DNA from: Podarcis liolepis
Taxonomy: Eukaryota
DNA: 64,000 bases
Direction: 5' to 3' (one strand)
Assembly (NCBI GenBank): GCA_965112155.1
Contig: OZ218103.1
Positions 11,933 to 48,584 of this stretch are shown here, one piece after another. Below the pieces are notes generated by a model, which saw only the letters and a program-made list of their open reading frames with translations, ran no database searches and was not told where the DNA came from. The position numbers were made by a program, and so were the translations under genes. The number at the start of each line of letters is the position of its first letter. The stretch's first letter is position 1.

Positions 11933-11987
<55 letters not shown>
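11933..11987. repeat. (TTA)n microsatellite
   Basis: Pure trinucleotide run. Confidence 0.97.
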
Positions 11988-12315
11988 TTATTTACTAGCC
12001 TGCACCTGTGCTTTTAACTGCAACATGATATGCAGAAATTATGGCAGTGAAGCTTTCATAATCCCTTCATCCTCCTTGCAGGAAAAGACTTGCTTTATTT
12101 CTGGGTGCCTGCTGCTGTGCAAGGCATAGGATCAGGAAGAATAAAAAAAGTTTGCAACTCTTACTGTTTATGCAAGCTAGACAGCGAGACTTAAGTGGGT
12201 GCTTGCCATTTCCCCCTTTATATTTACTTCTCCTTCAGAAATCTAATATGTAGAATAAGGTTTACCCCCATTCAAGATGCACTTTGCCCTGTCTGTGCCC
12301 ACCCAGTAGTTTATT

Positions 12316-13931: not shown

Positions 13932-13983
<52 letters not shown>

Positions 13984-15245: not shown

Positions 15246-15360
15246 CAGGGTTTCCCAAGCTTGGGTCTCCAGCTGTTTTTGGACTCCAGTTCCCATCATG
15301 CCTAGCTAGTCAGGGATGATGGGAATTGTAGTCCAAAAACAGCTGGAGACCCAAACTTGG
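15246..15360. mobile_element. hAT MITE, right terminus truncated
   Basis: cagggtttcccaagcttgggtctccagctgtttttggact...agtccaaaaacagctggagacccaa forms a long inverted repeat. Confidence 0.8.
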
Positions 15361-15780
15361 TATACAGTGAAGGCTTGTCCTTTAGGGCAAATGGGGCATT
15401 GCCCACTGGCCCACTTTCTTGCTTGAATCCAGCCCAGGTCAGCTTCCTCCTCCTTAGTTTCAGTGTTGCCATTATCATCAAATAATAGGAGGATGGGGCA
15501 AAATTTAAAGTAGTTGGCTCAGGATGCACCTACTGGCCTTTCAGCCTTTGCCCTCCCAGTCCCAATGGGCATTGGCCACCACTGGCTGGGCTGTAGAAAA
15601 CATTCTGCTTCTCATGATGAAGTCTCTCCAGCAATACCTATTTTAAAAGCATTTGATGTGAATTTCAAGACATTTATTCTGAGAACTCAATCTATTGCTA
15701 GGTCCTGTTTAGTTAAAGTGTCAGCATGTATCTTTCATATAATTTTCTTAAGCTACTAGTGAAGAGACAATGATAAAATA

Positions 15781-20226: not shown

Positions 20227-20887
20227 AGGCCCCATCTGCACTATGCATTTAAAGCAGTATCATACCACTTTAAACAGTCATGGCTTTTCCCATAGAATCC
20301 TGGGAACTATAGTTTGTTAAAGTTGCTGAGTGTTGTTGTTGTTGTTCAGTCGTTTAGTCGTGTCCGACTCTTCGTGACCCCATGGACCAGAGCACGCCAG
20401 GCACATCTGTCTTCCACTGCCTCCCGCAGTTTGGTCAAACTCATGCTGGTAGCTTCGAGAACACTGTCCAACCATCTCATCCTCTGTCGTCCCCTTCTCC
20501 TTGTGCCCTCAGTCTTTCCCAGCATCAGGGTCTTTTCCAGGGAGTCTTCTCTTCTCATGAGGTGGCCAAAGTACTGGAGCCTCAGCTTCACGATCTGTCC
20601 TTCCAGTGAGCACTCAGGGCTGATTTCTTTAAGAATGGATAGGTTTGATCTTCTTGCAGTCCATGGGACTCTCAAGAGTCTCCTCCAGCACCATAATTCA
20701 AAAGACTGCCCCTATTTCCCTCCAAAGATAAAATTCCCAGTTTCCTGAAAAGAGGAATTGTTTAACCACCCTGAGAACTTTAGCTCTGTGAAGGGAATAG
20801 GGGGACTCCTAACAACTCTTTGTGGGAAGCCATAACTGTTTAAAGTGGTATGCTCCTGCTTTACATTTATAGTGCAGATTGGGGCCT
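20227..20887. mobile_element. Long-TIR MITE (possibly PIF/Harbinger-like) interrupted by BovB
   Basis: aggccccatctgcacta...ataccactttaaacagt versus actgtttaaagtggtat...tagtgcagattggggcct; TSD not readable, so superfamily is uncertain; related remnants near 10680-10780 and 22350-22560. Confidence 0.75.
20331..20704 (-). mobile_element. BovB LINE 3' end
   Basis: ORF 20346-20675 RVPWTARRSNLSILKEISPECSLEG...WRALVHGVTKSRTRLND; (CAA)n tail; closely similar to the 1745 copy. Confidence 0.95.
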
Positions 20888-40706: not shown

Positions 40707-42334
40707 TACTAAGGAGAGATCAGAGGATCCAGATCTGTTCCTTTATGCAGAGTAATAATGCTCCTTCCCTTGTCTTCTATCCCATCTGACTGTCTTGAAT
40801 CAGACGGCATTGAATATCCATGTGTGGGCATAACAGTTTTAGATGTGCCCAAGCCTGGATAATTTAGTCAGTATTCCAGATGAAATTTGAGATGATCCTA
40901 GATAAAACCCAGGAATCGGATGCCTGATATGGGCCCCAGTACTTGGGATTTATGCATTAAGGACATGATGCCTGCTTGTGAATTGACCTCCGGTAGTGTT
41001 GAAGTGCAGGATGTACATGTGAGGAGGGGAGACATGGTCGTGTTTCCCATCATATGTAGGGGAGTGGTGCTGGGGCAAAGCTAAGATTTAATCCAGCCCA
41101 TAGGCATCTATATGTGGGGATGAGGAAGACAGACAGAAGTGGTTTGGAAAGCTTTTACTATAGCCGCGGTGAAACATGCAGGCTGCTTTTCTTTTTAAAA
41201 CCTGTTCAGCCAGGTGATTGGATGCAATAAAAATGTGCAAAAATACCTTCGGCTGCTTTATTGTCCTCCCCCCCAAATAATGACCTTTTTATTTGATTTC
41301 TGCCAAATTGAAAAGGAAAGTATTACAAAATGGTTTACAGATTGTATTCATTGCAGGTAAGATTGAAATGAGTATACCGTAGAGGGTTGGAAATGTAGTG
41401 CCCGAGGAGCTGAATTTCCTTTAATGTTGGTGTGTTTAGAAAAACGATTTAATTCTTGTGGGGAATCTGTTTTGAACGTTATTCAAGATACTACTTGTGG
41501 TTGGCTCCAGATGAAATTTCACTTGACTATGTAAGCAGTATTTTGGATGTGGAACTATTTGTATTAACTTTCAGCTGCTGTGATCCGCTTTGTCAGTTAG
41601 CGTTTCTGGGGGGTGGGGGGTGGGACGGGATAAAATTATAATAAATGAGGGATGAATTTGTTAATCCCTATTTGTTAACTCTTAATTAAGCAGGGATTGA
41701 AGAATAAAATGTGAAGTTTTCTGGGTCCTAGGCGGTGCCATGAACACATGAATTGTAAGAGTCTAAAATGTCACTGACAAAATGAACTGACAAATTTAAG
41801 TGCAACTTTGTGAAAGAAAGGAAAGGCTTTGTAATTATTCAGTTTTGAGAGATATTGGAGTGGAGTGATTTAGGATGGGCATTCATAGGAAACCCAAGTT
41901 AAAATGCCCCTCCCTCCATCATTTATGTATTTATTTATTTGATTGATTGATATACTGCCCTTCATCATAAGCCCTTAGGGCAGTTCACAGAACCATAAAG
42001 CTCCATCAGTGGTCACTTTCTCCTTACAAGATTAACATGAGCAGAAAATCACAGATTTCTTTATAAACTGCCCTGAGTTCCAGATGCAACTGTGATGAAT
42101 TTGTTGGCATCTGTCTGTCCTGAGAAACAATGGAGCGCAAAGGTGTAAGAGACAATGGAGGTGAAGTCAAACTGCTGACTGCAGAGACCTGTTCTGTCCA
42201 CTGTTGTACAGTGACCGCATTTGCATGTCACATTAAACCATAGTTTAGTGGAACATGAGCAAGCAAAAAGCAAGCCACAGCAAGCCTTAGGTTTGCGCAC
42301 TCCCCTGGGAAGATGAGCTCAGAATTTGGATAGA

Positions 42335-42437
42335 GAGAAGCTTTTCTCCCTATTTTATAACCCAGGGCCATCTAGTGAGGATGGCTGTTGGAACTTTCAA
42401 GGCACACAAAGGAAGGTACTTCTTTACACCACACATA
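42335..42437 (+). mobile_element. CR1 ORF2 C-terminal fragment; target of the large MITE
   Basis: Translates TQGHLVRMAVGTFKAHKGRYFFTPHI|V (compare CR1 TRGH..KL....F....RKYFFTQRIV); interrupted at a TA. Confidence 0.65.
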
Positions 42438-43610
42438 CCGTATTTTTCGCCCCATAAGACGCACTTTTTCCCCTCCAAAAATGAAGGGGAAATCGGGGTG
42501 CGTCTTATGGGGCGAATGCCTGCAAGCCTCGCGCGCCCGGCAGGAGGTCCCACCGGGTGCGCGAGGCTTGGGGCGGCAGCCTGTCGCCCGAAGCACGGGG
42601 AGCCCTCTGGAGGGCTCCCCCTGCTTCGGGCGAGTGTCTGCAAGCCTCGCGCACCCGGCAGGAGGTCCCGCTGGGTGCGCGAGGCTTGGGGTGGCAGCGG
42701 ACTGCTTGCGCGCACCTAGAAGCTTGGGGCCAGCTGAGCTCAGCCCGCCCCAAGCTTCTCGGTGCGCGCAAGCAGTCCGCTGCCGCCCCAAGCCTCGCGC
42801 ACCCGGCGGGACCTCCTGCCGGGTGCGGGAGGCTTGGGGCGGCAGCGGACTGCTTGCGCGCACCTAGAAGCTTGGGGCGGGCTGAGCTCAGCTGGCCCCA
42901 AGCTTCTCGGTGCGCGCAAGCAGTCCGCTGCCGCCCCAAGCCTCCCGCACCCGGCAGGAGGTCCCGCTGGGTGCGCGAGGCTTGGGGCGGCAGCGGACTG
43001 CTTGCGCGCACCTAGAAGCTTGGGGCGGGCTGAGCTCAGCTGGCCCCAAGCTTCTCGGTGCGCGCAAGCAGTCCGCTGCCGCCCCAAGCCTCCCGCACCC
43101 GGCAGGAGGTCCCGCTGGGTGCGCGAGGCTTGGGGCGGCAGCGGACTGCTTGCGCGCACCTAGAAGCTTGGGGCGGGCTGAGCTCAGCACGCCCCAAGCT
43201 TCTAGGTGCGCGCAAGCAGTCCGCTGCCGCCCCAAGCCTTGCGCACCCAGCGGGACCTCCTGCCGGGTGCGGGAGGCTTGGGGCGGCAGCGGACTGCTTG
43301 CCGGCATGCAGAAGCTTGGGGCGTGCTGAGCTCAGCACGCCCCAAGCTTCTAGGTGCGCGCAAGCAGCCCGCTGCCGCCCCAAGCCTTGCGCACCCGGCG
43401 GGACCTCCTGCCGGGTGCGGGAGGCTTGGGGCGGCAGCGGACTGCTTGCCGGCACGCAGAAGCTTGGGGCGCGCTGACCTCAGCTTGCCCCAAGCTTCTG
43501 GATTAGCGCAGCGCACCTGGGGGGGAAATAAATTTTTTTCCCTTTATTTCCCCCCCTAAAATCTAGGTGCGTCTTATGGGCCGGTGCGTCTTATGGGGCG
43601 AAAAATACGG
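42438..43610. mobile_element. Tc2/pogo-type (TcMar) non-autonomous element with expanded palindromic interior
   Basis: Perfect 27-bp TIR CCGTATTTTTCGCCCCATAAGACGCAC; TA TSD at 42436-42437 and 43611-43612; extra TIR-motif copies at 42498-42516 and 43567-43580; CCGTATTT termini as in Tc2-like families (Kanga/MER104). Confidence 0.93.
42641..43499. repeat. GC/CpG-rich palindromic minisatellite, 148-bp period, about 5.8 units
   Basis: GCTGAGCTCAGC dyad centres at 42733, 42881, 43029, 43177, 43325 and 43473 (variant); 12-nt loops at 42659, 42807, 42955, 43103, 43251 and 43399. Confidence 0.95.
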
Positions 43611-43644
43611 TAGTTCATAGAATCTTAAAAGCTGGAAGGGACCC

Positions 43645-43820
43645 AAGTAAGAGCTGTTTAACAGTGGAACGGTTTCCCTTGGGAGGTTGTAGACTCTCCT
43701 TCCTTGGAGGTTTTTAAGCAGAGGTTGGATGGCCATCTGTCATAGATGCTTTCGCTGGGATTCCTGCATTTCAGGGGGTTGGACTAGATGACCCTTTGGG
43801 CCCATTCCAACTCTTCAATT
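43645..43820 (+). mobile_element. CR1 LINE 3' end, preceded by a short inverted CR1 tail piece (43616-43648)
   Basis: aagagctgtttaacagtggaac...ggaggtttttaagcagaggttggatggccatctgtc...gttggactagatgaccc...ttccaactct. Confidence 0.82.
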
Positions 43821-43954
43821 ATTTTATGAAAACAAATACAATAATTTCCACATTTGAATGCAGCCAAAGTCCAACCGCTTATGCTTTCTGGAAGTACTGT
43901 AATATATCCTAATACGAGTTATATTTTAGCAGTCAGAGTTTAGCAGGTTTGTGA

Positions 43955-43955
<1 letters not shown>

Positions 43956-43988
<33 letters not shown>
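43956..43988. repeat. (CA)n microsatellite
   Basis: Dinucleotide run. Confidence 0.95.
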
Positions 43989-44841
43989 AGTTAATGCCCC
44001 TATTCACATGTGAATATTGACAATCCCATTTGAATTTTTATGAGTGTCTGAAAATTCAATAGCGCTGATGAATGTTGCCTTCACCCAAATGTAATCATGA
44101 GCATTAACTCAAATATGTCTAAAAACTGGGGGGAAATATATATCTTTGTTTGGGTCTCATATAATTCAGCTAGGGTTGATCACATTCATATGTGCAAGTT
44201 GACATTCACCAAATTTTGGACATGAATTGCAACATATATGTAGAGTGGGTGGAATCTTTTTGTTTGTTTGTTTGTTGAATATTTTATTAGTTGAATATAA
44301 GAACAACATATAATCAAATACAAGCAATCAAATACAGTTTTCCCCTACCTCCCCAAAAAACACCCCCAACTACATCCAGGTAATTACATTGGTAATATAA
44401 TCAAATAAAAAATTATTTCTACAGTTGCTGGTTTAAAAAATGTCATTCTTTTTTTTAAAAAAGAACTATATATGACTTGCCTTAAAGAGTGGGATTTTGG
44501 GAAGGGGTAGGACAAAAATTGGAAATAAAGAAATAAATGAAAGCTTTGAAAATCACTTATCAGACGTAATAAGTTTCCCAGCTGCCCAGGAATTAGTCTG
44601 GTGAATTTACACATGCTGCACATGTCTCTCACTGCTGATTTTACATGTCTTGCAACTGACATTCCACTTACTACTAAAAAGTGTGCTTGTGGAGTTTTGT
44701 TCCTGAAATCCTTTGGTCTGACTCCTGTGAGTCTTGAGTGTCATTCCAGCTCCAGTAACTAATGCGGGTAGCACAGGTAGATGGATCTGACAGGACTGAG
44801 AACTAACAGCGTGTCAGACGCTTTTCTCCAATGAAGGCTAT

Positions 44842-46887: not shown

Positions 46888-48086
46888 CACACACCACACT
46901 TCATATTCTGCAGCCTTGCATAATGAATAGGGCACAAGAGGGGGAAAACAATATCTTAATCAGCAGAATTAGCATCTTTGCTTAAGCCCCCCCCCACAAC
47001 CAACTAGGTGGCATTCAGTTTTACAGTACCGACATCCATCAGCTGTTGGAGAACTTCAGTGTCACTGAGTACACTTCCTTTTTTATAATAGTAATTTGTT
47101 TCAAAGGACAAGTCTAGTCACTTTTATTTTTAAAGCACAAAAGATTACACTATACTAGAAAGGCAAGAGGCAGCATGAAAATAAACAGTTAGGATGAAGC
47201 TATGCATCCAGTTATCTTTTTAATGCAAAAAATGCCATGAATTTTGCCAGAAGAAATGTATTCTATTGATTTCTTGTATTCTTCTTGTTGCTGGACTAAA
47301 TGTTTTGGTAACTATGTCATGAAAGACATTGATTTGGTTAGCTTTTGAAGTGAAGCCAACAAAGGGAGGTTCTTTTTTAAAAAAATTTGCATCAACAATT
47401 TTATTTTGTACATTTATCAAAATTGACTTTTTGGGGAAGGCATTATGACTGCAGTCTGATGCACACATATATACAGCCTAATTTTATGTGTAAGTTCAGG
47501 AGGGCTTACTCAAAGAAACCCACACTGAATTCTGGCATAAGGTGAGGCTATATCACAATGTATTTATTTACTCTCAACGTTGGTTTTTAAAATAGTGCCT
47601 GAAGTTAAAAATCCAACACAATCATGGTTGGAACCGAGGCTCCGGTGACAATGGAAGTTTGTTTTGATAGACAGCTTTGCACTGACAACCACACACACAA
47701 AGTGACCAAAGACAAGGAAGGAAAGGAAGAAACACAGAGTATATAGCACAGAGCTGAGGTTTGGAGTGATGCAGAGGAATGTGTAGAACAGCTGCTCACA
47801 AAATACCTGCCTTGTAAGTAAATGGAAAGCTTCAGCTTCTATTAATTTGACTGGTGTGCTCTAGTCAACAGTAACGAAAATCCTATGTGATGTGCTTGCA
47901 ATGTAGCCCCCATTACATTTGAATAGACAATTTGGGACTGCACTGCTTTTTCTTCTTTTTGAAGTGTGCTGTTTTACACTGTGAGCAATTGAGATATGAC
48001 ATAAAGAAGCGTGAGGTTTTGCAGACGAGTGCTAGCTTAGAATGACTATTATTATTTCTACTAATACTGTATTATAATTGTTATTA

Positions 48087-48255
48087 CCGTATTTTTCGCT
48101 CTATAACACGCACCCGACCATAACACGCACGTAGTTTTTAGAGGAGGAAAATCCGTAGGCATGCCACCCATAGGCATTTCCTCCATAACACGCACAGACA
48201 TTTCCCCTTACTTTTTAAGAGGAAAAAAGTGAGTGTTATGGTGCAAAAAATACGG
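48087..48255. mobile_element. Short Tc2/pogo-type MITE (169 bp)
   Basis: TA-CCGTATTTTTCGCTCTATAACACGCAC ... GTGAGTGTTATGGTGCAAAAAATACGG-TA; internal cataacacgcac repeats. Confidence 0.88.
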
Positions 48256-48584
48256 TATTTTATTTCTGTATGACCCTCCTGGTTGGGAACCCAGACTGGA
48301 GTACATCATAAATAAGATATAGTCAATTAAAGCAACATTACATTGAAACCAATCTAAAAACTCCTAACATCAAGCAGAACCCAACTAAAACCTGTAATAA
48401 CATTTTTCAGCTGCTTGGTACCTGTAAAGGATGCAAGCAGTTTCTGCCTTAAAGTACCAGGTAGAGGCAAGCCCTACACTCACCACCCCCTCCCCTCAAA
48501 AAAAGGCTGGTGACCCCTACTTTACTTACATGGTCCACATAAATGGAAAAACACACACACCAGTGCCTTTTAAATAGATAATTT

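Follow-up and report, generated by a model that had tools for sequence, protein, structure and literature searches.

In this study we describe a 1,173-bp, TA-flanked insertion at positions 42438-43610 of the window (the whole 64,000-nt stretch of DNA that was analysed), which is very probably a very recent insertion of a long-form member of an abundant, non-autonomous, TA-targeting transposon family, carrying an array of a palindromic unit as its cargo. An earlier note on this DNA had recognised it as a mobile element of the MITE type, and this description holds, as the element is non-autonomous, is bounded by terminal inverted repeats (TIRs) and a TA duplication, and has an exact empty site in three sequencing runs. 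The coordinates and features listed in that note were all correct, with a single refinement that concerns a 12-nt loop.

The ends of the element are exactly defined. The TIRs had been described as perfect over 27 bp, and the left copy (42438-42464, plus strand) and the right copy recovered by the inverted-repeat search (43584-43610, minus strand) are indeed complementary at 27 of 27 positions, or 29 when the TA is included, with a chance expectation for this TIR pattern of 0.00 in the 64,000-nt window. The TA proposed as the target site duplication (TSD) is found directly outside both ends, at 42436-42437 and 43611-43612. Inside the TIRs, each end belongs to a backbone that aligns to a short family member at 48087-48255, comprising 42438-42522 on the left (plus strand) and 43543-43610 on the right (minus strand). 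Within the left backbone the inner 19 nt of the TIR recur in inverted form at 42498-42516, making a hairpin paired at 19 of 19 positions (z = -8.0), and within the right backbone a direct copy of the 17-nt inner-TIR motif lies at 43567-43583, adjoining the TIR itself. The motif CCCATAAGACGCAC is present four times in the element, two per end, and the two ends are asymmetric beyond 27 bp. We also observed that position 42495 carries G in this copy and T in 90-99% of the family reads and contigs; among the differences listed, this is the only well-supported departure from the family majority in the left backbone, as would be expected of a copy that is close to its source.

For the age of the insertion, contigs of public reads from three runs (X15, X17 and X5) and the raw reads of a fourth (X24) were aligned to 41588-44137. 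The empty TA site that was sought in the reads was found in one contig each of X15, X17 and X5, which joins 42435 directly to 43611 and reads ...CACACA-TA-GTTCAT; the joint omits 1,175 letters with a 2-letter ambiguity, which is precisely the element plus one TA, and its shorter side measures 64, 94 and 31 letters, respectively. The flanks in these contigs differ from the window at about 3 of 1,048 letters in X15, 11 of 1,238 in X17 and 28 of 1,072 in X5 (0.3%, 0.9% and 2.6%). Since the site is empty in a near-identical genome, and also in two others at increasing distance, the insertion must be very recent, and it is probably polymorphic or private to a lineage. The element had been called young from its letters, and this is borne out by the empty site in the near-identical genome, by the perfect TIRs and by CpGs that remain intact in a CpG-depleted genome. 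Cut-and-paste elements do excise, and an older insertion that had once been fixed might in principle have been excised precisely to give the empty sites; a footprint normally remains after Tc1/mariner excision, however, and all three runs, over their whole range of flank divergence, show a clean single TA, which argues for ancestral absence over excision. As the perfect TIRs and the intact CpGs, in a genome with a CpG observed/expected ratio of 0.31, also speak against an old insertion, we consider excision highly improbable. A heterozygous insertion in X15 was considered on account of the depth of its empty-site contig, 29.9 against 43-82 in the neighbouring contigs, and was dropped, because the share of element words in X15 is no higher than in X17, where the site is empty at full depth, and because mean contig depth is too coarse a measure.

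The DNA around the insertion is itself highly repeated, at 43628-43882 and in patches at 41928-42012, 42098-42182 and 42353-42437, with the raw-read depth reaching a peak of about 18,800 in the bin 43713-43797. The flanking repeat that contains ...GGTTGGACTAGATGACC... resembles the 3' end of a CR1-type LINE, the name that the earlier note had given it.

The family to which the element belongs is abundant. In the X24 raw Illumina reads (about 1.9 Gb, roughly 1-2x), counted at a likeness of 85% or more, the terminal bins reach depths of 2574+2571 over the left backbone and 2259+2261 over the right (about 5,100 and 4,500), against 0-5 in the bins of unique flank. AT-rich loose ends begin precisely at 42436 and at 43612 in more than 3,000 of these reads; as the loose ends start at the TA, the likeness shared across the family stops at the TA. 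The family thus consists of thousands of copies at 85% likeness or more. The interior is much rarer in the same reads: the left hairpin bins have depths of 92-190, the right inner bin reaches 485, and the array bins stay at 0-60. Interior bins accordingly lie 10 to more than 1,000 times below the termini, the array bins being about 100-1,000 times rarer, a rarity that may be overstated since GC-rich hairpin DNA is under-represented in Illumina reads. In the X15 and X17 contigs, the summed depth of the array bins amounts to tens to hundreds of times the unique depth, a sum that is not to be equated with copy number; given that X17 holds array sequence while its site is empty at full depth, array-like sequence must sit at other X17 loci. 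Some array bins are nearly void in X5 (6.5, 4.3 and 28). Other contigs skip parts of the interior, passing from 42584 to 43198, from 42724 to 42771 or 42774, and from 42705 to 43535 with 12 other letters between. The suggestion that unit number varies among copies is therefore sustained as regards a variable interior within the family, through the 169-bp relative, the drop in depth and the skipping joints, and as regards unit number specifically it is supported, not proven. The element described here probably comes from a subfamily with variable interiors.

The short-form relative lies in the same window at 48087-48255 (minus strand, opposite in orientation to the large copy), has a length of 169 bp, is flanked by TA at 48085-48086 and 48256-48257, and is without the GC-rich interior. 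It is 77% identical to the left 84 bp of the large copy and 84% identical to its right 64 bp. Its TIRs are decayed, with 5 of 27 positions differing between its two ends, and it keeps the asymmetric layout of the inner-TIR motif, which is repeated in inverted form at one end and directly at the other; it carries the variant ATAACACGCAC in place of ATAAGACGCAC. Because the relative aligns only to the two ends of the large copy, the latter can be described as a short backbone plus about 1 kb of GC-rich interior, and the decayed relative together with the fresh large copy indicates that the family holds both old and very young members.

A TA duplication is the hallmark of the Tc1/mariner/pogo superfamily, and from the TSD and the TIRs we infer that the element is a non-autonomous transposon of this superfamily, in which the Tc2/pogo type named in the earlier note would be a candidate. 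At 1,173 bp it exceeds most elements that are called MITEs; the backbone of the family measures about 150-170 bp. None of the window ORFs of 130 aa or more contains a Pfam domain or is of transposase size, and no transposase ORF that could represent an autonomous partner was found within the 64,000-nt window. The ORFs within the element arise as mirror images on the two strands of the GC-rich palindrome, and scanning one of them gave no Pfam match. With three positions left free, a metagenome scan for the TIR returned no match, and a full-text literature search with the TIR string returned unrelated primers only. As in a tandem-repeat-containing MITE, a central array (148 bp x 5.8) lies between end cassettes that are homologous to the short form. 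The element also comes close to being one long inverted repeat of tandem units, with 401-nt arms at 91%, which might suggest a member of the foldback (FB) class, or of some superfamily other than Tc1/mariner. Foldback elements have long TIRs made of tandem repeats that reach the termini, and a longer TSD that is not TA. Here, by contrast, the TIR is 27 bp, the array is central and its repeats stop short of the ends, the asymmetry of the ends beyond 27 bp is retained in the 169-bp relative, the TSD is TA at the large and the short copy alike, and the family-wide likeness stops at the TA. In spite of a resemblance to foldback elements such as Tetris (PMC4079207), we give this assignment a very slight probability, and treat the element as a MITE of Tc1/mariner/pogo type.

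Other inverted structures were noticed elsewhere in the window. Two 67-nt arms at 20230-20296 and 20817-20883, 84% complementary and 520 nt apart, look like the two halves of one element, of TIR or SINE-like type, interrupted by a nested insertion whose start near 20330 is a (GTT)n run; for the ORF at 20314-20748 there was only a sub-threshold match to DUF6239. Nested inverted arms at 4286-4395/5903-6012 (110 nt, 83%) and 4499-4560/5196-5257 (62 nt, 81%) may mark another TIR element of about 1.7 kb, or a pair of inverted repeat copies. In addition, the microsatellites (TTA)n at 11933-11994 and (TAA)n at 13933-13982, of about 50 nt, are inverted relative to each other at a distance of 1.95 kb, and a hairpin at 15250-15365, whose 54-nt arms are 89% complementary around a loop of 8 nt, has the look of a short interspersed repeat present in two inverted copies.

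Between the two backbones the element consists of a series of hairpins. The first hairpin had been placed at 42523-42570 and is found there, with arms of 23 nt (42523-42545/42548-42570), three mismatches and a GG centre; it is a solitary copy, A0, of the 48-bp hairpin A. The unique hairpin reported next to it, U, is likewise present at 42584-42633, with 24-nt arms (42584-42607/42610-42633), one mismatch and the 2-nt loop TG at its centre (z = -8.4). On the far side, a G/A/T hairpin with perfect 14-nt arms and a 10-nt loop occupies 43519-43556, at the inner edge of the right backbone. The 12-nt loop assigned to alternate dyads of the array does exist, although most of it is self-complementary, so that the hairpin is better described as having 23-nt arms with two mismatches and 2 nt between them. 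As single-stranded DNA, the 148-bp unit is predicted to fold in either phase into one hairpin with 74-nt arms (z = -17 and -22), a fold matched by none of 200 shuffles, and the predicted folding energy of the whole element is -741.8 kcal/mol. An RNA gene was also considered and rejected: the 139 Rfam matches obtained at a permissive E-value were all below the gathering scores, and nearly all were to long-hairpin miRNA-precursor models, equally on both strands, which is a generic hairpin signal.

In composition, the contrast of intact CpGs with CpG-poor flanks that had been pointed out is confirmed by CpG observed/expected ratios of 0.79 in the element, 0.30 and 0.26 in the two flanks of 5 kb, and 0.31 across the whole window. 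The element contains 111 CpGs at a GC content of 69%, rising to 72% in the array, and includes 15 of the 18 GGGGCGG boxes of the window, for the whole of which 1.5 are expected. By the usual sequence criteria its interior is a CpG island; a regulatory effect of this island would be speculation. The array also carries, per 148-bp unit, two HindIII sites 32 bp apart (between 42720 and 43497), a single SacI site at the dyad of B and a pair of BssHII sites, and a HindIII digest of the array is predicted to yield fragments of 116 bp and 32 bp.

The array itself extends over 42641-43499 and comprises 5.8 copies of the 148-bp palindromic unit, with 93% matches at a period of 148 and no indels according to TRF. 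The unit is its own reverse complement, in which shared arms link the tips of hairpins A and B. The claimed dyad spacing of 74 bp was recovered as a nest of inverted repeats whose arms are separated by 0 or 2 nt and whose centres lie 74 bp apart, the arms reaching 401 nt at 91% identity. Where we depart from the earlier note is in its reading of the monomers as alternately head-to-head and tail-to-tail, as opposed to a simple tandem arrangement. Tandem repetition of such a self-complementary unit places a dyad in each unit and another at each junction; the two layouts are therefore geometrically identical, and only asymmetric sites can reveal the history of the array. These sites keep the direct 148-bp phase.

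For this comparison the array was cut at its dyads into 74-nt half-units, oriented alike, which vary at 15 positions. At each of three B dyads in a row, position 53 is T in the left arm and G in the right; half-units 10 and 12 share the block at 46-53, and half-units 9 and 11 share the marker at position 17. Among whole units, 42887-43034 and 43035-43182 are identical in direct comparison (148/148) and agree at 134 of 148 positions as reverse complements, and 43183-43330 and 43331-43478 agree at 143 positions directly and at 127 as reverse complements. The direct-phase markers and the identical adjacent pair together imply that the array grew, at least lately, by direct tandem duplication. The tips of the hairpins follow a different course. 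Hairpin A runs along the array in the order flip, flop, flip, flip, flop, flop, as judged by markers that extend as far as 16 nt from its axis. At the first dyad, the tip of hairpin B (positions 67-68) has the opposite orientation to that at the two following dyads, the neighbouring position 53 not being inverted with it. Both the direct-phase duplications and the tip flips are thus shown by the letters of this copy. Polymerase template switching between the arms of an inverted repeat is reported to make the arms alike and to turn the spacer round (PMC8604942), and short-range template-switch mutations at inverted repeats are documented in PMC8794818 and PMC5453318. The tip flipping may thus have come about by template switching, or else by recombination between the arms.

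An alternative is that the array grew mainly by fold-back (snap-back) copying at the hairpin tips, each event adding an inverted half-unit of 74 bp, in which case the head-to-head and tail-to-tail arrangement would be its true history. When the two obvious recent tandem duplications are collapsed, hairpin A does alternate flip, flop, flip, flop, and positions 67-68 carry markers that mirror each other across the dyad at 42812.5, a symmetry that needs an extra flip under a purely direct-duplication history. The right edge of the array, where hairpin B has arms of only 21 nt followed by non-palindromic sequence, would also agree with such copying. Against this, position 53, the block at 46-53 and position 17 all repeat in the direct 148-bp phase, and the adjacent pair matches fully in the direct sense and only in part as a reverse complement, and we therefore regard growth mainly by fold-back copying as unlikely. 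Under the preferred history of direct tandem duplication, the short 21-nt arms with non-palindromic sequence beyond them suggest a single origin for the long palindrome, in an inverted duplication about B that preceded the tandem growth. The units diverge from one another by up to about 12%, and 12 of the 46 differences from the half-unit consensus are of the kind CpG>TpG/CpA. Since the insertion is new, this divergence and CpG decay imply that most of the array predates the insertion and was carried into the site as cargo; the identical unit pair alone may match the insertion in youth.

The insertion itself and the length of its array are read from the assembly only, and an artefact in the length or the internal order of the array, in the sense of a palindromic repeat expanded or collapsed in a real insertion, was also weighed. 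Palindromic repeats of 72% GC are difficult to sequence and assemble, none of the contigs listed spans the array, none of the four runs showed the filled site, which depends on the assembly, and a pair of units identical at 148 of 148 positions is the kind of feature an assembler could create. On the other side, the 148-bp register is consistent and free of indels, the unit variants are ordered and not scrambled, two runs have array-like contigs at 85% likeness or more, and the termini, the TSD and the empty site agree exactly. We judge such an artefact improbable, and continue with the array as assembled.

The following course of events would account for these observations. The 27-bp TIRs and the inner-TIR motif are presumably the binding sites of a transposase acting in trans, a role we assign from their sequence and layout, and this transposase would then mobilise the element by cut-and-paste. 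The backbone of about 150-170 bp holds about 1 kb of GC-rich hairpin modules, among which the 148-bp unit has been multiplied to 5.8 copies by direct tandem duplication, presumably through unequal exchange, slippage during replication or slipped repair of the gap left by excision. The dyad spacing of 74 bp is a consequence of tandem palindromic geometry, and the tips of the hairpins have been inverted repeatedly, giving the flip and flop forms, as expected from template switching or inter-arm recombination. Most of the array was accordingly assembled in source copies and then transposed as cargo. A bolder version, which we offer tentatively and think rather doubtful, is that a TA-targeting family is still active, or ceased to be so only very recently, in lacertids of the wall-lizard type, and that its long subfamily grows and reshuffles the array at each move, the slipped or fold-back repair of excision gaps adding units and template switching flipping the tips. 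If this were true, transposition and the birth of satellites would be mechanically coupled; each new copy would drop a 1-kb island of unmethylated-looking CpGs and GC boxes into AT-rich DNA; and the palindromic cargo, by folding back, would keep the TIRs close to each other and let a 'MITE' bear a kilobase cheaply.

Recent activity of cut-and-paste DNA transposons is uncommon in amniotes. The clean empty allele at 0.3% flank divergence points to very recent movement in the lizard lineage, and hence to a live source of transposase. Moreover, the copy is an unusually legible record of the amplification of a palindromic unit together with the flipping of its tips, and so bears on the question of transposons seeding satellites. 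Each insertion brings 111 CpGs and 15 GGGGCGG boxes into CpG-poor DNA, which might alter the local chromatin. This significance is drawn from one locus together with read-depth evidence.

Small transposons with an array of repeats are already known; what is distinctive here is the fully self-complementary 148-bp unit, the flip/flop record, the reptile host and the very recent movement. In the bivalves, DTC84 of Donax trunculus and the pearl-type elements of oysters have high-copy end cassettes around up to about five or six core repeats, and in DTC84 the repeat variants are ordered and the palindromes in the repeats have been proposed as hotspots for changes in array length (PMC3879986). The lizard element resembles these tandem-repeat MITEs in being a high-copy non-autonomous cassette with a short central array and ordered variants. 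DTC84 has short inverted repeats, a putative AA duplication, a microsatellite module and a palindrome only near the repeat junction, whereas the lizard element has 27-bp TIRs, a TA duplication, a vertebrate host, a unit that is self-complementary throughout, and flip/flop tips.

Tetris of Drosophila virilis has the same ends as a short MITE, contains internal tandem repeats and has seeded a satellite (PMC4079207). As in Tetris/DAIBAM, the long non-autonomous copy of the lizard has the ends of a short form (here 169 bp), and its internal tandem repeats give it a foldback structure. The repeats of Tetris, of about 220 bp, lie within long TIRs as direct arrays in each arm, unlike the single central self-complementary array of the lizard element; and while Tetris-type repeats may seed satellites, the lizard unit is known here only inside the element.

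Among reptiles, Anolis has many TA-type non-autonomous families without a known partner, some with ends like those of Tigger or Tc2-related elements, and for most of its mariner-like families a comparatively old age is reported (PMC3014272). The present family is similar to Stowaway-like MITEs and to the TcMar-N MITEs of Anolis in its TA duplication, its TIRs, its apparent lack of coding capacity, its thousands of copies, its AT-rich sites and, as we infer here, its mobilisation in trans. It differs from the TcMar-N elements of Anolis in that the lizard copy is 1.17 kb long, has a GC content of 69%, consists mostly of array, and is absent from a near-identical genome. Lastly, the flip/flop states of the tips of hairpins A and B match the effect of short-range template switching at inverted repeats, which homogenises the arms and inverts the spacer or tip (PMC8604942; PMC8794818; PMC5453318). 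Those reports concern isolated inverted repeats in genes and RNAs, whereas in the lizard such hairpins are stacked in a tandem array within a mobile element, where the same mechanism may have acted.
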